Below, piece after piece: positions 5,475 through 64,000 of a stretch of DNA of 64,000 nt (within the stretch, counting starts at the first letter, position 1; each line of letters begins with the position of its first letter). Position numbers and translations under genes: made by a program. The DNA comes from Anthoceros angustus. Its lineage: Eukaryota > Plantae > Anthocerotophyta. Where the stretch lies: contig MU008152.1 of the NCBI GenBank assembly GCA_010909165.1, forward strand, positions 434,001 through 498,000, read 5' to 3'. The notes beneath the pieces are model-generated. The model saw only the letters and a program-made list of their open reading frames with translations. It ran no database searches and was not told the DNA's origin.

Positions 5475-7217
5475 TGCGAATTGGAAGAGGAGCTGAAAGG
5501 GCGCAGAGAGCGTGTCGGAAGCTTGGTGAGAGCGAGAGGACTGTGATGGCTTGCTCAAGTGGCTCGCTTCCAGCGCGCATTTCTAGCCCGGAGAAGGCGG
5601 GAATCGCCGCGGGCAGGCGAAACCCGGCGAAGGAATCTGAGACGGTGGCGAGTCCAAGTTGGCGATGGGGTGTGTCCCGGTCGTGGAGGTAGCTGGGGGC
5701 CTCGTGGGCGAAGGACGCCGGCACGGGCTCGGCCCCACTAGTACTCTGCCCCCGCACTGGTTGCGCCGCCCTCCAATCGGAGAATGCGCCATTTAGCCGT
5801 GCGATTGCTCGGGGGTCGCGCAAAGTTGCGTGCCCGACACACGCCGAACTGCGCAAGTCTTGTGTCCTGCTGGCCTGGCCAGTTCGTTGCAGCTTGCTCC
5901 TTCTTGAGCCATGGCCGCCGGCTACGGAACGTAGATTTGTTTGTATGTCGACGATTTCACATACAGCTTCAGGGGCCAGGGTTTCAGACCGGCTACTCTA
6001 TGATTGTTCTAGCTTTCACTCGAAGCATCGATAGCGGACTGAAAATCGCTCTTGTCGTGCGACTTCTAGGGCATACAGGCCCAGTGACGTGATGACCAGT
6101 GCTTTGGCTGACAATTCTTCTCATCCAGACCTTGCAGACATTATGTGCAGCTCTCAATATCTCAGGCTAAACACCCAAGAGTCTCAAAAGAGTCCTCCTC
6201 ACATCAAGGGCTGACTCACATCAGCCCCATCCATATCTAGCACACTTGTATCTTGAAATCTATGTACCTTGGGTTTTACAGAGGCTGTACTGGGAAATAT
6301 AATGCTTCCAGAACTTCATGTCATCATCCTGCTTTTGGTAAAACGGAGGCTTTCAGGAGCATCCTTGGCACCAGTGGCAAGCTTTGTAGTAGTTTGGACA
6401 TGCGTAACACCTCATGGACAACTTTCAATGGCGATTGGCTGCGAGTTAAAAGTTCCACGTACTCCATGGACGAAGATGCACAGACAAAGGTGTACCTTCA
6501 GTTGACCTGGGTCCCTCAGCTGGAAAGGGTGCAAAGCAGTGGCTTCCACGGCAAGATTTGCAAGACACTTGGAAACAAATGTATGCACGCCGTAGTTGAA
6601 AGTGTGTTGTGTACAACGCACTACATACTGCATACACTACTGATGAGGACAATGTGTCCATCACACCATCTGGAAGTGTGGGATTGGTGTAGTTAACCAA
6701 GTTGGAGGGCTGCTGACGGCACTGCACCAAGTGCTTCGTGCTGCTACTCGCCAAGGGCTTGCAAAGGCGATTCCGGGAAACTTCCCAGATTCCCAAGTGG
6801 TAGCGCACTGACGTTTGATGCTTGCAAGCGTCCAAGCGGACACGAAATGAATCGCTCGGCCCCACGTGAAGTGCGGGCCAGCTACTTGCTACGCACACAA
6901 GCCGGGCAAAGGCAGACATCGCATGACGTACGTGTCAGTGCTCAAATTTGGCAAGCTGGGATCAGGCTCCTGGCTGTGATGAGCACCTAGACTAGTGAAG
7001 GACTGCGGGTGTGGAATCCCAGCCTCTCAGGTGGTCCTGGAGCCAATCCCTGGCGTCGTGCACGCCGGCACAGATCGCCGCCTAGGACGTCGGTGGTGGT
7101 TGCAACTTGCAACTTGGGCCAAGCCATCTGGACGACAAATTCCAAATCAGCTAAGCCAAGTGTAGCTGCCGGGGCCCAGGGGCCAGAGCCCGACCGATTT
7201 CAGGCCTCGCTTTTGAG

Positions 7218-9406: not shown

Positions 9407-10756
9407 TCAGGCTGCAGCAAGGTGTGCCAAGAGGCCGACCATGCCGGCGTTGATGTAGGTGGTGGGCTCAGCCTGCCCGTAGTTGCTGCGGTCGTCGCCA
9501 TAAGCATCGGCCTCATCGGGTCCTCCCACAATGCCGCCTGTCAGCTGGTTGGGGTCAGAAGTGCTGGCCTGATAGTAGGAGAAGCTGTCAGAGTAGGCGA
9601 TCTCGGCAGGGTGAGTCTTGATGCACGGCACTGAAGCAGCAAGATGGTGAACCCGTTGGGGGAAGCTGGATCCAAATCCCACCATGTACGACATGCTCTG
9701 AGGATTGTCTCCCAGAATGTAGTCCACCTGTAGCAGGCTGGCAATAAAGGTCATGAGAAAGTGATCAGATTTTGGACTCAACAAGCAAAAACAGTGCAGA
9801 TTCCATCACTGCGCAGTGCAGCAGGAGCCCAATATCATCCAGACAGTACCTGGGTTTTGGCCTGCGCACAGAGCTGGGCGGGAGTGATGGCCGTGGTGCC
9901 ACAGGTGACTGTCTGCTGCGATGCATCCAGGTACTTGGCGTAGACGACGAGGAGAAAGGAAGATGCGATCAAGTACTGCAGATTGCTGCCTGCCGCGAAA
10001 TAGAAGAGTCCGCCTGCAGCACACGACACACAGGTTCACAATGCAATCAGCTTTGACATATATGATCTGAAAGCAGACTACTGAGCATTCATTCAATCTT
10101 CGACAGGGCCAGGAATGGGATGCAGATGAATGTAGAAGCATTACGGACCAGGAGTATACTTGGCTGCAGAGACGCCTGGCATGATGCCGCACACGAATGC
10201 ATCGGCTTGCCTGCACCCCATCGGCTTTGCCAGCAAGGAAGAATTGGGCAGCCAGGACCTGAGCGCCCGCGTATTTGTTATCCCAGCTGAGTGTGGGGGC
10301 GGAGGTGGTGGCGCCACCCAACTCCTCGCCGTTGTCCACAAGGCATTGCAGGTACTTGTGGTCCCTGGATGCCTTGTACAGCCAGGCTGTTCCCCATAGC
10401 AGCTCATCCTTGAAGCCCGAGTAGGAGCAGTAAAATGGGCACACTTGCGACTTGAGCGACCCGTCGCTGTATGCCGCTCTGCACCCCCACGCAAAAAAGA
10501 AGAGCTAAGTGGCGCTCGCCAAAAGCGTAGCAGAGTACTGGGCATCAGTGGCTTGGAACACAATGGAGGCAGCAGCCAGAGCGGCAGCCGTTTCCGCAGC
10601 AGCATCGGAGCCTGGGTTGGTGGCGTCAATCTTGTAGGCAGTGCGGTCAGTCTGCATGTCCTCGGGCCTTTGCCAGCACGTATGATCCTTGGTCGGATCC
10701 GCCACTTGAACGTACAGCTCGCTTGGCCCTGTGTGAGCTTTGAACAGATAGTCAGT
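9407..10756 (-). pseudogene. GH9 endoglucanase copy 2, 5'-truncated, inverted relative to copy 1
   Basis: Near-identical to 1555-2857 including introns. Retains [18 protein letters not shown] but has frameshifts near 10490 and 10215. Similarity ends at CACAAGACGCC (about 10756), where unrelated sequence begins. Confidence 0.9.
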
Positions 10757-10766
10757 CCCCCAACGG

Positions 10767-11195
10767 ATGGCGTCTTGTGGTAGTGGCCGCCGGGGAGGAA
10801 ACAATCGTGGTCGGGCTGGCCCATTGAAGCGGAGGGGGCCTCGGCGTGGAGGGAGGAAAACTCGTGCCAGACGTAACCGCCGTGATGAAGAGCCTCAACG
10901 ACCTGAAGGTATGGGCTATGGTTCGATGACCATGACTACAAGTACAAATTTCATGGTGTTGGCTCCGAAGGGAAATTATGAGGAAATGGACTTTTATGTC
11001 TTGAAATGTATGGAACCTGTACAGAACTTGACGGCAGCCTTCAAGGATACTAATTGGGGAGGGGAGGAGTTTGAAGCAGGCACTATTGTTGTGAAAGCCT
11101 TCTACTATGAGCAGGTTCCTGACAGCATTGGTATGTACACTTTCTTTGGGTGGCGGCACCCAATAGTCCCTAGGAGGACTGGTCTTGGCAACTAA
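10767..11195 (+). other. Unidentified ORF (Arg/Gly-rich start, then FYVLKC...D.WG..F.AG..VV...YY), probably TE-derived; second copy 12398-12838
   Basis: ORF track. It replaces the 5' part of GH9 copy 2. No family recognised with certainty. Confidence 0.3.
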
Positions 11196-12094
11196 GTTTT
11201 GATGTGGCCAATGGAGAAGCAAAATGAAAGCAGAACAATGTCGGCTCCACCCACATGAGAGGAAGTACATAGAGTGGTTGGCAAAGGTCGAACATGCAAA
11301 GGTGAAAAAGTTGAAGACCGTGATGATTGAATGTGTTTGTCGTGTGGATCATGTGAGGGGTCTCTGTCAATTTGTCATGCACCTGGTTGTGAGTGTTTAG
11401 AGGCCATGTGACCAGACCCTTTTTTGGACAAATGCGATGTGAGTTGGGGATAAACACTTTGAGGCTGGATCCCATGTTGTATCAATGGGTGTACGCCTTG
11501 TGACGAAATGCCCCATTTTGTGAGGGAACACCGAGTGCTGACCCCCCTATGTACTGAATTGTTCAATGTATATGACAGCTTAGAATGAACGAGTGCCCTT
11601 CAAATTGCGTTCGCGCGTGACAATGGGGTCCAACAAAGCCTGCTTAACCTAGCATCCTCCACCCACAAATGGCACAAACTGATGGCCCAGTGAAGAGTGA
11701 AAAAACTCGAAGGGCTCAAGCACAATCTGCCCATCACCACACCGTCTGGAATTGGACTAAACATATATAAGGATGGCACCCAGCTACATTCCTACTCTGC
11801 CTGTGCATTCAAACTGGTGCATTGTGAACAACACAAATTGCTAACCAAGTGAAGTATGCGCTAGCCTATGAACAAAGGAACATGTAAGGCTGCGAAGTTC
11901 CTTCCCATCGTGCTTGGATGGATTAGGCATCCACAACACTTCCACCATCGTCATCCTCGCCCTCTTGCACCATATTATTGTCGACACCTCGGATCTGCAG
12001 ATTAGGCTCCCCGCCGCGTTCTTCCCGACCATACGGCGTGGCGCGGCGGCGTCTCGCCCCGCAGCCCAATACCGCTTCCGCCTTTATGCGGTGG

Positions 12095-12407
12095 TCGCTG
12101 TATGCCGCTCTGCACCCCACGCAAAAGAAGAGCTAAGTGGCGCTCGCCAAAAGCGTAGCAGAGTACTGGGCATCAGTGGCTTGGAACACAATGGAGGCAG
12201 CAGCCAGAGCGGCAGCCGTTTCCGCAGCAGCAACATCGGAGCCTGGGTTGGTGGCGTCAATCTTGTAGGCAGTGCGGTCAGTCTGCATGTCCTCGGGCCT
12301 TTGCCAGCACGTATGATCCTTGGTCGGATCCGCCACTTGAACGTACAGCTCGCTTGGCCCTGTGTGAGCTTTGAACAGATAGTCAGTCCCCCAACGGATG
12401 GCGTCTT
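12095..12407 (-). pseudogene. GH9 fragment (copy 3)
   Basis: [51 protein letters not shown]...; part of the tandem duplication. Confidence 0.85.
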
Positions 12408-13639
12408 GTGGTAGTGGCCGCCGGGGAGGAAACAATCGTGGTCGGGCTGGCCCATTGAAGCGGAGGGGGCCTCGGCGTGGAGGGAGGAAAACTCGTGCCA
12501 GACGTAACCAGCCTGATGAAGAGCCTCAACGACCTGAAGGTATGGGCCATGGTTCGATGACCGTGACTACATGTACAAATTTCATGGTGTTGGCTCCGAA
12601 GGGAAATCATGAAGAAGTGGACTTTTATCTCTTGAAATGTATGGAACCTGTACAGAACTTGACGGCAGCCTTCAAGGATACTAATTGGGGAGGGGAGGAG
12701 TTTGAAGCAGGCACTATTGTTGTGAAAGCCTTCTACTATGAGCAGGTTCCCGACAGCATTGGTATGTACACTTTCGGATCGTGGTGGCGCCACCCAATAG
12801 TCCCTAGGAGGACACAGTCTTGGCAACTAAGTTTTTGATGTGGCCAATGGAGAAGCAAAATGAAAGCACAGAACAACTGTATCGGCTCCACCCACATGAG
12901 AGGAAGTACATAGAGTGGTTGGCAAAGGTCGAACATGCAAAGGTGAAAAAGTTGAAGACCGTGTGATGATTGAATGTGTTTGTCGTGTGGATCATGTGAG
13001 GGGTCTCTGTCAATTTGTCATGCACCTGGTTGTGAGTGTTTAGAGGCCATGTGACCAGACCCTTTTTTGGACAAATGCGATGTGAGTTGGGGATAAACAC
13101 TTTGAGGCTGGATCCCATGTTGTATCAATGGGTGTACGCCTTGTGACGAAATGCCCCATTTTGTGAGGGAACACCGAGTGCTGACCCCTATGTCTTGAAT
13201 TGTTCAATGTATATGATGACTTAGAATGAGCAGGTGCCCTTCAAATTGCGTTGCGTGACAATGGGGTCCAACAAAGCCTCGCTTAACCTAGCATCCTCCA
13301 CCCACAAATGGCACAAGCGATGGCCCAGTGAAGAGTGAAAAAACTCGAAGGGCTCAAGCACAATCTGCCCATCACCACACCGTCTGGAATTGGACTAAAC
13401 ATATATAAGGATGGCACCCAGCTACATTCCTACTCTGCCTGTGCATTCAAACTGGTGCATTGTGAACAACACAAATTGCTAACCAAGTGAAGTATGCGCT
13501 AGCCTATGAACAAAGGAACATGTAAGGCCGGCTGCGAAGTTCCTTCCTACTGTGCTTGGATGGATTAGGCATCCACAACACTTCCACCATCGTCATCCTC
13601 GCCCTCTTGCACCATATTATTGTCGACACCTCGGATGCA

Positions 13640-14884: not shown

Positions 14885-16045
14885 CAGGGTGTCATTTTGA
14901 CCCCGCCCCAAGCTCGGTCCCGGTCCGGGCATGTGTTAAAAAAAACATGGGACCGGAGGTTCTTCAGAAGTCCGGTCCCCACCCTCTGTCCCCTATTTTT
15001 TTCGGGGACCGAGGGTTCATAAAAGGTTCGGTTTAAAATTAGTAAATTACTTAATTTTATATCCAAGGATTTATATTTATTATGGACACATGGACCCATC
15101 TTATAATTGGTATGGTCATAAAGATACTTACCATGGATCTATGGGCTATGTCTTTATTTATCTAATTCCATCCATGGCCTATTAATGCAGCCTTTATTCT
15201 ATGAGATTTTATTAGCTTATTTTGATACATCTATAAAGTCATGGAGTGTATGAAGGTTTTGTAATATCTGACTACTCTGAAAGTGAACTAAGTTCTTGTA
15301 TTGCTGGTGCTAATAAATATGCTTTAGCTGTTGTTGAAGCAGTGAATAATAAGTTTCCTGATCTTTGCGTGTTGCATGCTTGTCGTCTATTCAGTCCTAA
15401 ATTTTATCCTGAACATGCAGATGAGCGTATGCAGTTAGTTAATAGTTTGTTAGAGGTATTGTTGAAAAAGTTTGGAACTAACTCTTTGGATGCAAATACT
15501 AATGTTGTCGACCCTTTTGTAGTTGATGAGGTGTGTCAAGCTGAGTTGCTAACATTTGTGTCCATCTTGAAATCTTCTTGTGCTGGATTGAGTATGTTAG
15601 CAGCTTACAAAATATACTCAACAACTCGGGAGTGGCTAGTACTGACACCCTCTATGTTACGTCTTTGGGAATTATGTTTGGTCATACCTTGTAGTACTGC
15701 TATATGTGAGCGAGGATTTTCTAAACAAAACTTTGTGACGAATAACATGAGAACTAATCTTAATATTTTGACCCTTGATGCATTCATGAGTATATCCATC
15801 AATGGTCCGCTTGTTAAGAAGATAGATTAGAATGGTATTTTTAAAGCTTGGAAACACCAGCCTCGACGATAGAATATCTTAGACATTTATATTTTTTATA
15901 TTATTATTTATAAATTATTTATTATATTTAATGACCAAGGGTCGCAAAAAGGCACCGTCCGTGCTCGGTCCGGGACCGAGCGTAGCCAGGCTAGGCGCTA
16001 GTAGGCGGTCCCGGGGACTGAGATAGTACTCGGTCAAAATGACAC
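14885..16045 (+). mobile_element. Internally deleted hAT DNA transposon
   Basis: Left TIR CAGGGTGTCATTTTGACC (14885-14902); right TIR remnant GGTCAAAATGACAC (16032-16045); 8-bp TSD CTCTACAT / GTCTACAT; subterminal GGTCCCGG/GGACC motifs. ORF 15246-15830 has hAT C-terminal dimerisation motifs (LCLVIPCSTAICERGFSKQNFV...R..L....LDA.M). Confidence 0.88.
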
Positions 16046-16129: not shown

Positions 16130-16777
16130 TAGACGACAAGGCGATGGTGCGGCATCCACGTTGATGTCGGACATTTGCACCAGTTCCCAGATGCTGCGGG
16201 AACACGCACAGGGGTATAGTCAGGGGAGGAGATGAGATAGGAGGCATGGAAGCAGCCAGGCCAGAGCTGGTGTACCGACAGGCAAGCATTACTGCATAGC
16301 TGAATGGTTGGAGATGAGAAGAGGCACTCAACAGTCGTATACATTCCCCTAAAAACGTCCACGGTCATGAGCAGTTCTCCCAGGACTTGGGCAAACTTCC
16401 GCTTCTTTCATGGGCTCCAACAAACTCTACTGGTGCAGCCCTTCCGGCTGGTACACAAGTCTATACACGTTCATCCACTTGCTGCTTATGAAAACCCTCC
16501 TACTGCTTATGAACGAGAGTTGCAGGACAATTTTCATAAGGAAGAAATGTTGGGCATTTGCAAAGAAGCAGCACCCTGTTCACCTGTTCAGGGCCAATGC
16601 ATCTGGGACCTGCAGGCACAAGGACCTACATCACACGCACTCGTCCGCGCCAGGTTACTTGTTCCCATCTGTCCTTTCCAGCAAATTCTACTTTTCAAGA
16701 AACCCTGGGTGGTCAGAGACGCATCAGAAGACACCCATTTCGTGAAGCCAAAGCCCAGTCCTACAGAAGCTATGTGA
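16130..16777 (+). pseudogene. Unidentified protein-like relic
   Basis: 157-codon ORF 16304-16777 with protein-like composition. The same frame continues upstream (RWCGIHVDVGHLHQFPDAAG) through in-frame stops. Confidence 0.3.
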
Positions 16778-16802
16778 GTAGTTCGTTCGAACCTCTCTTC
16801 TT

Positions 16803-16836
16803 CCCACACCACACCACACCACACCACACCACACCA
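16803..16836. repeat. (CACAC/CCACA)n microsatellite
   Basis: About 6-7 pentamer units. Confidence 0.9.
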
Positions 16837-17070
16837 TAACAACATGGCCCAGCTGTGAAACCCGCAAACTTTGCAATTCTGCATCGCAATGCCAGCATGA
16901 GGAAACAAATATATGCAAGATGGTGCAAACTTCCCAGGAACTAAAGTGAGCAAAAGGCAAAGGAAAGGAGAGCGGCGTCCACCTGCTTCCTCCTCGATTC
17001 CGAGACAACTTGCGAAAAACGAGCGGAGCGGAATTGCGTTGCAGGCGACAAGCACACAACACGTCGTCCC

Positions 17071-18066
17071 CTACCACGCACCATCCAATACCTTATGGTA
17101 CTGGATAACGTGAGGGATAAGGACGGGCGAGTCGTCCTGCTGGGGCGGAAGCCCCTTCTCCTCATCCATCTCCTTCACGGACTTAACCCCCTGCAGCACA
17201 GCCGATCCGGGAACCGGTCTCCCGCCCTCATTGTACAGATCAAACCACGGATACCCATGTTGCGCATACGTGGCCGCGGACACAGGCGACTCGGGGGGAG
17301 CCTCCCCGGTCACATCCCTCCACATCTCCGAATCACACAGATGCACGAAAACCCGCCCTCTCGCCGACTGGTCCCAGCTCTGCAGCCCGTGGTCATCCTC
17401 GTAGATCTCCTGCTTCATCTTACCCCCCACGGCCACGCCCATCTCCACCTCCGAGGCCGGGCCGTCCGCGAACATGAGCCCCGGGCGACGGTAGCTAAGA
17501 GGCTGCTCGTCCGGGAACTTCCCGGGGACGGGCTCGAAGACGCAGAGCTGCAGCCCCCCGTGGGTCTCCTCCCCCGTCACCTGGCCCTCCACGCTGTAGC
17601 CCAGTCCCAAGTGCACCGCCACGAACTGCCGGATGGTGCCGTCCCCATTGTTGATGCCGTCCAGCCAGGGCTGATCCGGCACCACCACGTAGTCCTGCGG
17701 CTCCGCGTGGAGCTCCTCCGACCATGGAGTGCCGGTGATGGCGCACACCTTGCCCACGGCCACCTTGAGCGCATTGGGCCGCCACTCTCGCCCGTTGAAC
17801 CCTAGCCACATGGCCTCCCGCTGGAAGATCGGCAGGAACACCCCGCCGTGCTGCCGCCATTTCTCCGGGACCCTGTCTGCGTGGTCTGCCACTCTCCGCA
17901 GTGGGAAGGAGCCCAGCTTCGGTGGCAAGGGGTACGTTCTGCCATCGTCAGGAATGCGGATGGTGCGGTGGAATTGCACCGTCACTGCCCCGATCCTCAG
18001 CTTGTTCCCCTCCACGTGCACTTCCAGATCGGCCCAGCCCGGCGTCCGTCTTCCCGCATCCGCCAT
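17071..18066 (-). CDS. Intronless 331-aa protein of an uncharacterised bacterial/fungal-type family (HGT candidate)
   Basis: ATG at 18066 (MADAGRRTP), stop at 17071. Strongly GC3-rich. Motifs FHRTIRIPDD, YPLPPKLGSFP, REAMW, QDYVVVPDQPWLDG, IRQFVA..LGLGYSVEGQVTGEE.HGGLQ, MG.AVGGKMKQEIYED, RVFVHL, GYPWF resemble a widespread prokaryotic and fungal hypothetical protein family (recalled, not searched). Confidence 0.85.
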   Translation of the reverse strand: MADAGRRTPGWADLEVHVEGNKLRIGAVTVQFHRTIRIPDDGRTYPLPPKLGSFPLRRVADHADRVPEKWRQHGGVFLPIFQREAMWLGFNGREWRPNALKVAVGKVCAITGTPWSEELHAEPQDYVVVPDQPWLDGINNGDGTIRQFVAVHLGLGYSVEGQVTGEETHGGLQLCVFEPVPGKFPDEQPLSYRRPGLMFADGPASEVEMGVAVGGKMKQEIYEDDHGLQSWDQSARGRVFVHLCDSEMWRDVTGEAPPESPVSAATYAQHGYPWFDLYNEGGRPVPGSAVLQGVKSVKEMDEEKGLPPQQDDSPVLIPHVIQYHKVLDGAW

Positions 18067-18678
18067 GGCTCTCTCACCTCGCAGCTCAAGCCTCAAGCAG
18101 CCCTCTTCACACACACAGGTTGTGTGCAAGGGACAGACTTGACTGTGTCCACAGTGGTTTTCCCAAAAAGTTGTGGAGAGTGCAGGAAATATTTCGAAGA
18201 GTGAAGTTTACTCTCTCCCGGTTTACTTCTGGATGGGCTTTTCCCATCGGTTTTTCACCTCAATAAAAACTTTCTGCTCTCTCCCGTATGTGCATATGCA
18301 CTGTATGTACTACGTAGTATGTACATAGCCCACGATTAAGCCTGAGACAGGTCATAGATAGCGTGTACGAGGCATGTCATCAATCTCCGTGGCAAATAGT
18401 GCCTGGCCTCTACGCGTCATGTTATCCCCATCTGACCCATGCCCGGCACAGGGCATGGGGCCATAGCTTTTGGAACAAACTTGTGGAGGTTCGCAGGAAG
18501 GTTGCATCCAATGGCCGAGATCGAGGTCATGAAACTTGTGTGAGTGGGGCTATATGGGATGTGGCTGTACGGTATTAAGTGAAGGTAACGCTCTTTGCCA
18601 AATCTGCGACCATAGTAAAGCAACTATCATGCCTTCATCCGGTCGCAAGGCAAGGCTTCGCAAACAAAGCGACCGGAC

Positions 18679-19790
18679 TGTGAAAATGTACATGGTAGCT
18701 TAGGGATTATTTTCAGAGTGAATCAGTGTACAGGGCAAAGAGTTCACAAAGATGAATGTAAACCGACATCGTGTGAGTAACTGTTCATTAAATGTCTATT
18801 CGTAGCTAAAGCGAAACGTGCCCTAACTAGTGCCCTAACTCGCTATGATTCTAACACTCCCACTTAGTAAGTGGGCACTAATCTTCATTATTTAATGTTG
18901 ATTATTAACTTGGGATAGTTATAGTTAGGGGAAGGTAACTGTTACACTATCCTCTAGCTCTGATAGCTCTAAAAGTTGCCAAATACCTTCCTTACAAGCA
19001 TGAGTTAAGGAACAATATTCAGCTTCGATTGAGCTAAGAGCTACTGCTTGTTGCCTCTTATTACTCTAGCTTGTCACTGTGCCTCCAAGTAGATAGACAA
19101 AATTGCTCGTGCTCTTCTTGTTGTTGGAGTTTCCAACCCAATCGACATCGCTCAAACCTTCGAGCTGAAGAGACTCATCTTGCTTGATGTATGATTGATA
19201 TAAGAGTCCCATATCTGAGGTGGCTCTAGGTGGTTCTAAGATATCTATGAAGAGACTCATCTTGCTTGATGTATGATTGATATAAGAGTCCCATATCTGA
19301 GGTGGCTCTAGGTGGTTCTAAGATATCTAAACACACTTTTAACAGCTTTCCAACGATCCTGTATGGGGTTAGTTAATGAATTGTGAAAAGCTCCCACTGA
19401 GTATGCTAAGTCGGGTCTTGTACAAACCATGAGATACATGAGGCTCCCTATTGCCGAGGAGTAGGGGAGCTCATGAGTGTCAAAGTCTTGACCCTGTTGC
19501 TCATCAGCTAAGCTAAGTTTAAGATTCACCTCCATTGGTGTGGATATAGGTTTGGCCTCTAGCATTTTATAATTGGTTAAAATCTCTTGAATATATATTG
19601 ATTGATGGATAAATATGCTCCTAGCATTTCTATGTCTGAGAACTTGAATCCCTAAACAATGAGAGAGATCTCTACAAGTGGTTATAGCAAACTTCTTTGA
19701 AAGCATTGACATGGTCTCTTCTAGTATATCCTTGGAGTTAGACATGAGAAGGAAAAGAAGACTTTTAAGAGACGGGAAAAACTCATCCAC
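18679..19790 (-). mobile_element. Ty1/Copia 3' part: RT, RNase H, PPT and 3' LTR (about 18679-18856)
   Basis: RT motifs LSHCLGIQV, IHQSIYIQEIL, PISTPM, PYSSAIGSLMYLMVCTRPDLAYSVG; RNase H DVDWVG...KKSTS. PPT AAGTGGGAG followed by TGTTA at 18856. Contains an approximately 82-bp tandem duplication at 19168-19330. Confidence 0.88.
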
Positions 19791-61045: not shown

Positions 61046-64000
61046 TGTTAGTTAGGGCACGTTTCGCATTTCATCGTGTAAGTCATATTGAACCGACACG
61101 TCATTTCCTCAGAGTCATGTCGTTTCATAATGTACCAGAATAAAACTCTCTCCCCCTTGTAACATAAACGCTTAATCAGAATCTCTCTCCTCAAAATCGC
61201 GTTATGGTATCAGAGCAGTAGATCAAGCATCTGAAGAATGCTCTTCCATCCCAACATGGGATCTATGTCCCAAACTAAGAAGATCAGACTCTAAGCAAAA
61301 TTGCAAGCAATGGATCCTAAGCAAATCCAACTGCAATGCTGCAAATGTTTCACTTGTGTGGACAAAGCACACCCTTGTAGAACATCTCAAAGACCTACAA
61401 GAAAAATGAGATATCTTGATCAATTATCAGATGTAGCACCCTGTAATCTAAACTACAGAGAGGCTAGCTATGAACAGCGTCTCACCTTCTTAGAACATAA
61501 AATTAGCAGACTTAACAATCATTATAGGCCTACAGTAGAGTCCAGACTTGCAGCTTTAGAAAATAGAATCATGTTGATTACACTCTACCTGGATCATGTA
61601 GCAGAATCTTCCTCCTCAAGCAACGCACCTAGACGACGCTAAACCTCGTCCAGGGCAATTAGATAGGAACATTCACTACAGTTGATACATAGAGCACATC
61701 CTCACAACATGGGTACCACCATTCACAACTATAATGTCGACATCAAAGATCGGGACCGTTTCAATGGTTCTGACTATGATACATGGGTGGTACGCATTAC
61801 CTCCATACTTGATGAGGCCGACCTCATGGGGATAGTGGATGGTACAGAATCCGAAGTCGTTCTCAATGCTGCAGGCACAAATCAGGCCGACGTGGATCAA
61901 TGGAAGAAAAAGGACAAGAAAGCAAGGAAGCTTATACTCGCATGACTTGAGCGACAAATGTTACATCAAGTCGATGGAACAACAACCTCAGCCCAAGCTT
62001 GGTCACAGCTTGCAAACCTGTACCAAGCGGAAGATCTTGGCACCATGGTGGTAGCAGTGAGAAATTTGTTCTCACTAAGAATGAAGGACACAGATATGGC
62101 CCAGCACCATATATCTACCTTCAGGACAGCCCATGCCAAACTTGCTAGCTCCGGCTGGCAACTCGATGAGGTGAAGGCAACAGCTGTGTTTTTATACACC
62201 TTGCCATCTAGCCACCATGACTTTATTACATCACAGAACCCTAGAATTCGGGACGCTCAAAAAGCCTTCAAGAAAGGCGGACAAGCCCAGAAAGATGCCG
62301 AGGGCATACTCACTGAAGTTCTCTCGGCCTTCATACAAGACAATCTTACCAGACAAACTTCCTCAAGCTCCAAACCTGGCCGCATCCTGTATGTGGGTCC
62401 TGGTCGTGGCCGAGGCCGGCCCAATAGACCACAACAAAGATCAGAAAGATACGATCGCTCATCAAGTAGACCACCCCAAACAAGACAAGGCCCAAACCAA
62501 AGGAAGAAAGGCAGTTGTAATTGGTGTGGAATCCCGGGACACTGGGAGAATGAATGCAGGAAGAAGGCTGCAGGAATACCTCAAAGAGCACTACTTGCAG
62601 CTAATGTCACCTCGACAAACAATACGTATACACGAAGATCTCCAGTGTCATCATCACCTGGAATTATGGCAGTCTACATTACCAGAAATCCAGTTGACCA
62701 TACTGGATGGTATCTTGACTCTTGTGCATCAGTGCACATCTGCCACACAAGATCATTCTTTACCACTTATTATCCAGCTCCTCCTAATAAATTCGTGTTG
62801 TTAGGAGATGATTCAGGACTTCGAGTGGAAGGCAGAGGGGAAGTACCACTTACCCTCACTGACCAAACCCAACTCCACCTGGTAAATGTCCTTCACGTAC
62901 CTACAATGGTGAAGAACCTGATATCAGTTTCATGGCTAATGAAGATGCGTCAATTTACTTTGACCTTTAATGACACCTGTTGTACACTAACAAAGATTAG
63001 GCATTTACAAGCCTCAAGTACAGGCTACCCTGTACAGGATATATACAAACTGGATGCCACATCCAGCAAGTACAAACAGTCACATGATGCTGCAATGGCC
63101 GTGACCCAAAACCAATCAAATAAGTCGAAGGAATCACTGAAATGGCACCTTCGCCTTGGTCACCTAAGCAACGAACGAAAACGACAGGTTACAACAGCTA
63201 GTCTATACATGGATGGAATCGAGAAGTTACCAGAACCTCCGTTTTGTGAGACATGTATCCTGGCCAACAAACGACAAGATATGTTTCCCACTCATCAGCC
63301 AGACCAGAATAACACATTACTAAAACTTGTTCATACGGATCTATGTGGCCCTATGGCCACACCCTCATTCGGGGGTGCAAGATACTTTTTGACATTTACG
63401 GACGATTTTTCCAGAATGTGCTTTACTTACCCATTGACTCTAAAAAGTCACACTTTTGAAACTTTCCAAACCTGGTTGGCACTTGTGGAGACACAGACAG
63501 AGTGTAGACTTCGTTGTCTACGTTCAGACAACGGCGGGGAATTTGTCTCCGAACAATTTGATTGCTTCTGTCAAGACAGGGGAATCGTTCGTCAACTCAT
63601 TGTAGCATATACAGCCCAGCAAAACGGGGTTGCAGAGAGGCTAAACCAAACCCTACAGAGGATGGCAAGAGCAATGATGAAACATGCGGGCTTGAGCAAA
63701 TGGGCCGAGGCCGCCCAATAGACCACATACCGCAATGTGCTTCCCTCTCGTTCCATTCACGTCTCAACACCTTATGAGTTATGGACAGGCTCTAAGCCAT
63801 CGATTCTGCATCTCCGTATATTTGGTTGCACAGCCTACAGCTTCATTCCTGAACCCGGGAAATTTGACGACAGGGCAGAAAGATTAATTTTCATAGGCTA
63901 CGGTGATGGGATCAAAGGGTATAAGCTATTCAACCCACAAACGAGAGCTGTTACCTTCGCAAGGAGCGTTACCTTCCACGAGGATCCTCTGCTTATACCA
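61046..64000 (+). mobile_element. Ty1/Copia element (5' LTR 61046-about 61204, PBS 61205-61216, extra ORF, gag-PR-INT), continues beyond the window
   Basis: TGTTAG start; TGGTATCAGAGC PBS; gag from about 61709; CNWCGIPGHWENEC; WYLDSCASVHIC; WHLRLGH; HTDLCGP; LRSDNGGEF; QQNGVAER. In-frame stops at 61943 and 63719. Confidence 0.93.
61301..61642 (+). CDS. Extra ORF (113 aa) between PBS and gag: Cys/His cluster plus two coiled-coil repeats
   Basis: CCKCFTC..AHPC, then YEQRLTFLEHKISRL and VESRLAALENRIML. The frame is uninterrupted. Confidence 0.55.
   Translation: MQAMDPKQIQLQCCKCFTCVDKAHPCRTSQRPTRKMRYLDQLSDVAPCNLNYREASYEQRLTFLEHKISRLNNHYRPTVESRLAALENRIMLITLYLDHVAESSSSSNAPRRR

Follow-up and report, generated by a model that had tools for sequence, protein, structure and literature searches.

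The 64,000-nucleotide (nt) stretch of DNA from the hornwort Anthoceros angustus analysed here (contig MU008152.1, positions 434,001 to 498,000; hereafter the window) carries on its minus strand, at positions 17071-18066, an open reading frame (ORF) that we read as a real, transcribed, intronless nuclear gene, which would have descended from a bacterial gene by horizontal gene transfer (HGT). An initial annotation, made from the sequence alone, had proposed that the ORF is a horizontally acquired gene kept under selection. Our results support this proposal for a gene of a bacterial-type, uncharacterised family in the plant genome, because of the homology and tree position of the protein, the equal sequencing depth of the gene and its flanks, the transcript-like coverage, the existence of hornwort and COMMD9-linked relatives, the ratio of nonsynonymous to synonymous substitutions (dN/dS) and the lack of a closer plant orthologue among 5.8 billion searched proteins. 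The HGT claim is very probably right, and very probably already in the literature. For the reading as a whole, that is, an intronless HGT gene which is identical with a published one and has a soluble product, we estimate a probability of about 0.72. The case is of modest interest as an example of HGT and adds little in that respect, because the gene is very probably already on the published A. angustus list, and it is of moderate interest for the protein family. Added here are the sharing of the gene beyond Anthoceros, the soluble product, a predicted beta-sandwich without a solved relative, and links to ubiquitin modules and to extracytoplasmic function (ECF) sigma factors and XRE regulators.

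Family membership and phylogenetic position

Among 8000 scored candidates, at least 3185 homologues of the window protein were found at E <=1e-3, mostly bacterial or metagenomic, and the best bacterial matches were 55-61% identical to it across more than 90% of its length (lowest E = 9e-126). Since the translation matches thousands of proteins, down to this E value, a chance ORF arising from GC-rich DNA was ruled out. An exhaustive HMMER scan yielded 3787 representatives at 50% clustering, 847 of which were below 1e-30, and 327 relatives, spread over at least 12 phyla, were located in the species genomes of GTDB; the best 80 of the 327 loci came from Myxococcota, Cyanobacteriota, Chloroflexota, Actinomycetota, Planctomycetota, Acidobacteriota and others. 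Among 100 bacterial rows, 93 of the 337 alignment columns were at least 95% identical; as judged from this alignment, roughly one quarter of the protein's positions is near-invariant across bacterial phyla. The motifs singled out in the initial annotation (RTIRIPDD-x-YPLPP-LG-FP, P-QPWLDG, IRQFVA and GG-M-QEIY-D) are real, and are invariant or nearly so in the family. Its assignment of the family to bacteria and filamentous fungi was borne out for bacteria, but fungi have the family only distantly, as Ascomycota clusters of ubiquitin-like proteins (template modelling score, TM, 0.62; feature score 0.79).

Bacterial hypothetical proteins of about 330 amino acid residues, from Thermincola potens (P0019), Rubrobacteraceae, Solirubrobacterales, Microcoleus and Polyangiales, have the same length and the same invariant motifs as the hornwort protein, are 50-61% identical to it over at least 90% of its length, and share its predicted fold (ESM Atlas TM 0.87-0.90). 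Unlike these bacterial copies, the hornwort copy has eukaryotic untranslated regions (UTRs), a GC content at third codon positions (GC3) of 0.82 and six changes at near-invariant sites. Its variable loop is the shortest among the closest relatives, and the ECF sigma or XRE regulators that often adjoin the bacterial copies are without a counterpart at the hornwort locus.

Members are also carried by six large plasmids, including those of Streptomyces, Bradyrhizobium and the cyanobacterium Kovacikia, and by two very large virus genomes, Virus Rctr197k (KX853510.1, 3216-4300; 46% identical) and the uncultured phage LR756511.1 (595 kb; 33% identical). The plasmid and virus members are named 'hypothetical' or 'putative membrane protein', and plasmids and large viruses are possible vehicles for the spread of the family. 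No family model of Pfam or NCBIfam matched the window protein (hmmscan, E up to 1), PHROGs contained no family for it, and PADLOC gave no match for it, for Thermincola P0019, or for P0010 or P0004 of the family. The family is among the larger strongly conserved ones for which neither a Pfam model nor a solved fold nor a function is available.

The only match above 61% identity was a transcript of another hornwort, Nothoceros aenigmaticus (EukProt EP00246, P0010), which is 68% and 58% identical to the window protein in two conserved blocks. A further eukaryotic relative, P0021, is encoded on Logan contig L007 (from the pair SRR33208242 / SRR33208241), about 570 nt upstream of a COMMD9 gene. L092, a genomic contig from the adjacent run accession, aligns with L007 in four blocks of 100% identity, with introns of about 139, 162 and 175 nt, and extends to 246 nt behind the stop of the P0021 gene. 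Because L092 shows these three introns, L007 is a spliced transcript contig, and the P0021 gene lies in a eukaryotic nuclear genome beside an intron-bearing COMMD9 gene. Inserts of about 90 residues occupy the variable loop of both P0010 and P0021, and at the DNA level the two genes share 72-76% identity with the window gene. No synteny was found between the window and the P0021 locus, and the window contains no COMMD9. With a profile of the three hornwort-type sequences, the other two members scored about 740 bits, and the next sequence was a bacterial-type metagenomic protein at 524 bits. The initial annotation had named orthologues throughout green algae and land plants as evidence that would count against HGT; with a hornwort-weighted profile, no closer plant or green-algal orthologue was found among the best 120-150 hits from 5.8 billion proteins, in collections from which some plant proteomes may be missing.

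We reconstructed a maximum likelihood tree of 104 rows under LG+C20+F+G4 with posterior mean site frequencies and midpoint rooting. The window protein formed a clade with those of Nothoceros and P0021 (98/87), in which the latter two were grouped (100/92), and this position next to Nothoceros suggests that the source of P0021 is probably another hornwort. On the midpoint-rooted trees the clade lies inside bacterial diversity. It belongs to a polytomy that also contains Solirubrobacterales and Gaiellales (Actinomycetota), together with unlabelled clades from high-GC soil metagenomes, and the contigs of the nearest unlabelled clades have a GC content of 0.66-0.70, bacterial gene density and XRE-type neighbours. 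For all three proteins the best labelled BLAST score was to Actinomycetota, by a small margin. The EukProt protein P0130 was placed elsewhere in the tree. When sequences from Clastostelium (Amoebozoa) and Entosiphon (Euglenozoa), together with P0126 and P0206, were added, they stood apart from the hornwort clade in free trees, on long branches.

The donor would most likely have been a high-GC soil bacterium of Actinomycetota type. Since the genes of Anthoceros and Nothoceros form one clade, the transfer probably took place before the split of these two lineages, and the event would therefore be older than the Anthoceros-specific transfer of the literature. Such an older transfer, shared more widely among hornworts, changes how the event is dated and counted. 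Since the transfer, the gene would have been held under purifying selection, with a somewhat faster rate in the window copy.

Genomic location, transcription and the published gene

Two public runs from one sample contain the stretch, a DNA run (X1; contig set of 98 Mb, close to the genome size) and a second run (X2; 30 Mb), which was taken as RNA by guess. The evidence from both runs consists of contigs, not raw reads, and the strand and the exact transcript ends are therefore inferred. The depth of X1 was 16.4 over the gene and 16.1-18.7 over the unique flanks. X2 gave two contigs, at 16243-16793 (depth 240) and 16847-18168 (depth 279), both identical to the window and free of splice joints, and its depth was zero on either side, below 16235 and from 18293 onwards. 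This footprint is probably that of an unspliced mRNA with a 5' UTR of about 100 nt and a 3' UTR of about 830 nt, interrupted only at a GGTGT/GTGTG-type microsatellite (16794-16846), which lies within the probable 3' UTR and splits the contigs of both runs. The non-coding parts of this transcript-like unit have a plant-like GC content of 0.51-0.54. By reading of the sequence, the first ATG of the apparent transcript is that at 18066, with none between the apparent transcript start and this position. An in-frame TTG is present upstream at 18129, yet the homologue alignments begin at residues 12-14 of the ATG form.

X1 also showed depth spikes at about 16235-16381 and 18146-18292 (1136 and 224, against about 16), with several loose ends at 16241/16242. 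High-copy repeat ends flank the transcript unit on both sides, and transposons may have moved or framed the gene.

The ORF had been described as uninterrupted over 996 bp and as more GC-rich than its flanks. Both observations held: the frame is present on the minus strand, and the GC content along the window is 0.62-0.67 in the ORF, compared with 0.33-0.53 in the flanks. The coding sequence has a GC content of 0.65 and a GC3 of 0.82, whereas GC3 is 0.54-0.62 in the host coding pieces of the same window (GH9, ABC transporter and GIL1-like) and 0.30-0.42 in its transposon ORFs. An antisense ORF of 236 codons (17095-17805, plus strand) and the overlapping ORFs of 111-157 codons around it are GC-rich shadow ORFs and not genes. 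The wider window is plainly plant nuclear DNA, with two GH9 endoglucanase genes, ABC-transporter exons, an ORF of GIL1/IRKI type and a full Copia gag-integrase ORF. From the depth, the plant-type UTRs and the linkage of P0021 to COMMD9, we conclude that ORF 17071-18066 is a physical part of the hornwort genome and not contamination.

The A. angustus genome paper (Zhang et al. 2020, Nat Plants, PMC7027989) reported 19 HGT genes in 14 families. Among them are the intronless genes AANG000517, AANG011215 and AANG011324 on scaffolds 2, 59 and 60, described as 'integral membrane proteins' (Supplementary Fig. 76 of that paper); the three grouped with Actinobacteria, with fungal homologues as outgroup, and were read as an Anthoceros-specific transfer. 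In the gene tables of the same paper, scaffold60 carries the GH9 genes AANG011320 (435474-436857, plus) and AANG011322 (443407-444657, minus), as well as AANG011314, an MFS transporter gene of fungal origin that is also listed as HGT. Because the gene order in the window (GH9 plus, GH9 minus, ORF) matches that of scaffold60, we consider ORF 17071-18066 very likely to be AANG011324, by map position and description. Equivalent residues of the two GH9 genes in the window are 9219 nt apart, compared with 9183 nt from start to end in the published tables, and the ORF lies about 6.3 kb beyond the second GH9 gene. The UniRef name of the Thermincola homologue, 'Integral membrane protein', is the same as the published family label. 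The exact window protein was absent from a collection of 15 billion proteins.

Like the published family, the ORF is intronless and transcript-supported, and it lies on scaffold60 just after the GH9 pair AANG011320/AANG011322; AANG011324 itself comes ten gene numbers after the MFS gene AANG011314. The published family groups with Actinobacteria, with fungal relatives more distant; for the ORF, whose clade lies in the polytomy described above, the lead of Actinomycetota in score is marginal, and the fungal relatives found were distant Atlas clusters. Two differences were found: the published transfer is Anthoceros-specific, whereas the clade obtained here includes Nothoceros and a third eukaryote, and the published name is that of an integral membrane protein, whereas the window protein is without a transmembrane segment.

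Selection and alternative explanations

The window protein keeps 87 of the 93 columns that are at least 95% conserved. Five of its six departures from near-invariant sites are conservative, and the sixth is a change from Pro to His in the AMPLGMGY motif. Comparison of the window gene with the P0021 gene, which the initial annotation had suggested in the form of dN/dS against orthologues, gave dN = 0.33, dS = 0.94 and a ratio of 0.35; dS is probably underestimated, because GC3 is 0.82 and 0.89. From these sequence comparisons, the window copy evolves faster than its relatives, yet it is clearly constrained.

Several points weigh against the reading of a transferred gene that is kept under selection, and against its published identity. 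The use of X2 as RNA evidence goes back to a guess. No single read-derived contig joins the gene to the transposon flanks, since breaks occur at 16242, at 16794-16846 and at repeats near 18250; the evidence for linkage of the gene to its flanks is therefore the equal depth and the assembly. Over the gene, 13 gaps of one or two bases occur in the X1 contig, several of them in the coding sequence (17152, 17187, 17297 and 17304), and these would be frameshifts if real; they were read as errors of the run because the much deeper X2 contig is identical to the window. The terminal branch of the window protein is the longest of its clade (0.94 versus 0.50 and 0.69; median 0.29), and it departs from near-invariant sites six times, more than the 95th percentile among bacteria (4). 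With respect to the donor, the tree shows a polytomy, and the best BLAST scores differ little (Actinomycetota 372, Cyanobacteriota 370). A forced clade of all eukaryotic members was worse by 45.9 log-likelihood units but was not rejected by the approximately unbiased (AU) test (P = 0.098). Finally, the identity with AANG011324, although very probable, comes from map position and description.

The long branch and the excess of departures, including the Pro to His change in a core motif, would suit a transferred gene that is now drifting, that is, one which is transcribed without selection on its ancestral function and is either a pseudogene-to-be or a neofunctionalised paralogue. The three paralogues in PMC7027989 make redundancy possible, and decayed transposons surround the gene. 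However, the ORF is intact across 331 codons, 87 of the 93 conserved sites are kept with five of the six changes conservative, dN/dS is 0.35, transcript-like coverage is high, and a confident fold prediction was obtained from the window sequence itself. We consider drift unlikely on this evidence; relaxation or functional change in the window copy is possible to some degree.

Vertical descent would make the gene an ancient eukaryotic one tied to the ubiquitin system, which was inherited in hornworts and lost in nearly all other plants. Members do occur in Amoebozoa (Clastostelium), in Euglenozoa (Entosiphon), in another EukProt species and, distantly, in Ascomycota, and a single clade of all eukaryote-type rows was not rejected in the AU test (P = 0.098), even though the constrained tree had the lower likelihood given above. 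The free trees, on the other hand, place the other eukaryotes apart from the hornwort clade on long branches, and the identity of the hornwort protein to bacterial ones is 55-61%, while the Clastostelium protein reaches at best 50% to any row of the tree alignment. Ubiquitin-like (UBL), UBA and RING modules are absent from the hornwort genes, no other plant or green-algal protein is near among the best 120-150 hits, GC3 (0.82) greatly exceeds the host-gene values, and very many independent losses would be required. The patchy distribution, the higher bacterial identity, the foreign codon composition and the absence of ubiquitin-system modules from the hornwort proteins make vertical descent quite improbable, and the trees disfavour, without formally rejecting, one common origin for the eukaryotic members as a whole.

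A fungus or another eukaryote as the donor, instead of a bacterium, appears very improbable. Hornworts live with fungi, fungus-derived genes have been published from the same genome (including the MFS transporter ten gene models away), and structural relatives are found in Ascomycota, but these fungal clusters are distant (TM 0.62, feature score 0.76-0.79), and their ubiquitin-like domains are missing from the hornwort protein. The contigs that hold the nearest sequences are of bacterial type, with a bacterial gene density and XRE genes as neighbours, and fungal homologues were the outgroup in the published tree.

Hornworts harbour bacterial symbionts, and an ORF derived from an associated actinobacterium or cyanobiont, through contamination or a chimeric assembly, would account for the bacterial-like composition, the missing intron and the failure of public-run contigs to bridge the gene and its transposon flanks; this is hardly credible against a DNA depth that is the same as in the flanks, non-coding sequence of about 100 nt (5') and 830 nt (3') at a plant-like GC content, nearest relatives that are eukaryotic transcripts (one of them joined to a spliced COMMD9 gene), bacterial identity that never exceeds 61%, and the same gene order on scaffold60 of the published assembly.

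Predicted fold, functional leads and neighbouring features

The window protein has 331 residues (36.7 kDa) and is acidic (pI 5.3). No transmembrane segment was detected in it, the maximum 19-residue Kyte-Doolittle mean being 0.73 (0.95 in the Thermincola homologue) compared with the usual threshold of about 1.6, nor was a signal peptide or an N-terminal signal-like segment. The label 'integral membrane protein' is contradicted by this hydropathy and by an all-beta globular model; the product is soluble by these predictions, and the propagated label looks wrong and should not guide experiments.

Structure prediction, which the initial annotation had suggested together with a Foldseek search, gave a confident model (AlphaFold2, 51-sequence alignment; predicted local distance difference test, pLDDT, 89.1; predicted TM, pTM, 0.87). 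Residues of about 15-180 together with 208-256 make up a beta-rich core in the model, residues 193-206 are a disordered loop (pLDDT <50), and the C-terminal tail is partly helical. The predicted protein has a single beta-sandwich core, into which a variable surface loop is inserted, and a conserved tail at the C-terminus. Foldseek against the Protein Data Bank (PDB) found nothing at E <0.001, only weak GH16/laminarinase rows with a TM of about 0.1, and a PDB profile search gave no meaningful match. In the VIA wide search and a second look, the highest Z values were 4.0 and 3.3, and the structures matched were generic sandwiches resembling Ig, MSP, p53 and TEAD domains. Ig-like, p53-type, TEAD and MSP binding domains are alike in the beta-sandwich core (Z 3.0-4.0 over about 105-125 residues), but these values are far below the level of kinship, the sequences are unrelated, and a function cannot be carried over from them. 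Related clusters in the ESM Atlas were bacterial hypothetical proteins (TM 0.87-0.90), VWA-fused proteins of Chlorobiota (0.87), Ascomycota 'ubiquitin-like domain-containing proteins' (0.62) and DUF7918 (0.47). Membership in Pfam DUF7918 (PF25534) was rejected, since hmmscan gave no match at E up to 1 and the likeness in shape is weak; a literature search found no papers on DUF7918.

Functional leads come from the neighbourhoods of 80 named bacterial loci and from the fusions in 50 extended representatives. ECF sigma or sigma70_r2 neighbours were present in about 15 of the 80 loci; in about 10 Myxococcota the recurring neighbour is a divergent ECF sigma-70 gene. In addition, a sigma70_r2 protein is encoded upstream in five loci (immediately upstream, on the same strand, in four; on the opposite strand in the fifth), which include Latescibacterota, Ignavibacteriota and Thermodesulfobacteriota and belong to at least two separate tree clades. 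A gene of XRE type (HTH_31) lies beside the family gene in five of the 80 loci (Actinomycetota), and also beside P0001, P0004, P0125 and P0127.

Among the fusions, TPR repeats were found in 15 of the 50 representatives and a Ser/Thr kinase domain in two (one of them P0184), with single cases of BTAD, MshEN, FGE-sulfatase and SH3. Entosiphon P0257 has an N-terminal UBL, the family domain and a C-terminal RING finger, and P0126 combines UBA with the family domain. P0206 contains a complete ubiquitin domain (residues 232-303) inside the variable loop, between the two halves of the family domain, which is unusual compared with fusion at an end; in Clastostelium P0202 the ubiquitin lies at 466-537, downstream of the first domain half, and is probably also in the loop. 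The N-terminal extensions of about 95 residues in several representatives, tested as hidden ubiquitin-like domains, had no Pfam match. The eukaryotic members with ubiquitin modules (Entosiphon, Clastostelium, P0206 and P0126) have the conserved domain in common with the window protein (E below 1e-69), and the Ascomycota clusters have the same fold (TM 0.62), whereas the hornwort proteins are without UBL, UBA or RING modules and stand apart from the ubiquitin-module members in free trees.

Since such fusions and neighbours are typical of signalling and protein-turnover pathways, the domain may be a cytosolic module for protein or peptide recognition in stress or proteostasis signalling. In bacteria this module would be coupled to ECF sigma factors or XRE regulators, with TPR repeats or kinases as fusion partners, and in protists and distant fungal relatives it would be fused to ubiquitin-like, UBA or RING modules. 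We put this forward tentatively, at about equal odds with an enzyme whose conserved Asp, Glu, Gln, Trp and Tyr residues form the active site; the very high conservation and the many invariant residues of these kinds fit an enzyme equally well. The initial annotation had suggested an enzyme or ligand-binding fold from conserved Asp, His and Trp residues. Two points count against the functional reading: the regulator neighbours occur in a minority of the loci and partly reflect shared ancestry, and searches for a family model, a solved relative (best Z 4.0) and a match in the defence and phage libraries were all negative. It is conceivable, though doubtful, that a bacterial-born recognition domain was captured repeatedly by eukaryotes, was wired to ubiquitin-like, UBA and RING modules in protists and fungi, and has had a stand-alone stress role in hornworts since before the split of their main lineages. 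The ubiquitin-system fusions in eukaryotes and the regulator neighbours in bacteria are concrete, testable leads, and, with hornworts now transformable, the plant copy offers a route to the study of the family in a eukaryote.

In Thermincola potens (CP002028.1), the family gene (6001-6990) is located between an HD-domain gene and a TIR gene of ThsB type, near cas1/cas2, a Schlafen-like helicase and a Mu-type transposase, in what looks like a defence or mobile island. A role as a defence gene, suggested by this neighbourhood, was not supported: PADLOC gave no match, and the context is not conserved in other bacteria.

The features of the locus are summarized in Table 1. The ORF had been described as lying between a plant hAT element and a Copia element. 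Remnants of both do flank it, but with Pfam matches below the cut-off (Dimer_Tnp_hAT, E 0.004, 17.3 versus 21.4 bits; RVT_2, E 1.3e-6, 28.7 versus 31.6 bits, just under it), and because both matches are sub-threshold the flanks fit decayed remnants.

Table 1. Features of the ORF locus and its transposon flanks in the window
Feature	Position	Strand	Remarks
Coding sequence	17071..18066	minus	331 codons + stop, 996 bp, no intron; ATG at 18066, stop 17071-17073
Probable 5' UTR	18067..18168	minus	about 100 nt, no upstream ATG; start inferred from X2 contig end
Probable 3' UTR	16243..17070	minus	about 830 nt, GC 0.51; ends from X2 contigs
Codons of the predicted variable surface loop	17464..17523	minus	residues about 182-201 within loop 180-207; long inserts in relatives
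Flank: hAT-like transposase remnant	15246..15830	plus	Dimer_Tnp_hAT, GC3 0.30; decayed, C-terminal dimerisation region only
Flank: Copia-type reverse-transcriptase fragment	19308..19790	minus	RVT_2, GC3 0.39

The description of the neighbouring genes as decayed is accurate for the flanking transposons but not for the two GH9 genes upstream, which correspond to annotated gene models. The two (1426-2190, plus; 9806-10777, minus) form an inverted pair with 83-97% protein identity over the shared exon, and a third, short GH9 fragment is present at 12075-12408 (minus); they agree with the tandem array AANG011320/AANG011322 published for scaffold60. The intact Copia gag-integrase ORF of the window lies at 61958-63721.

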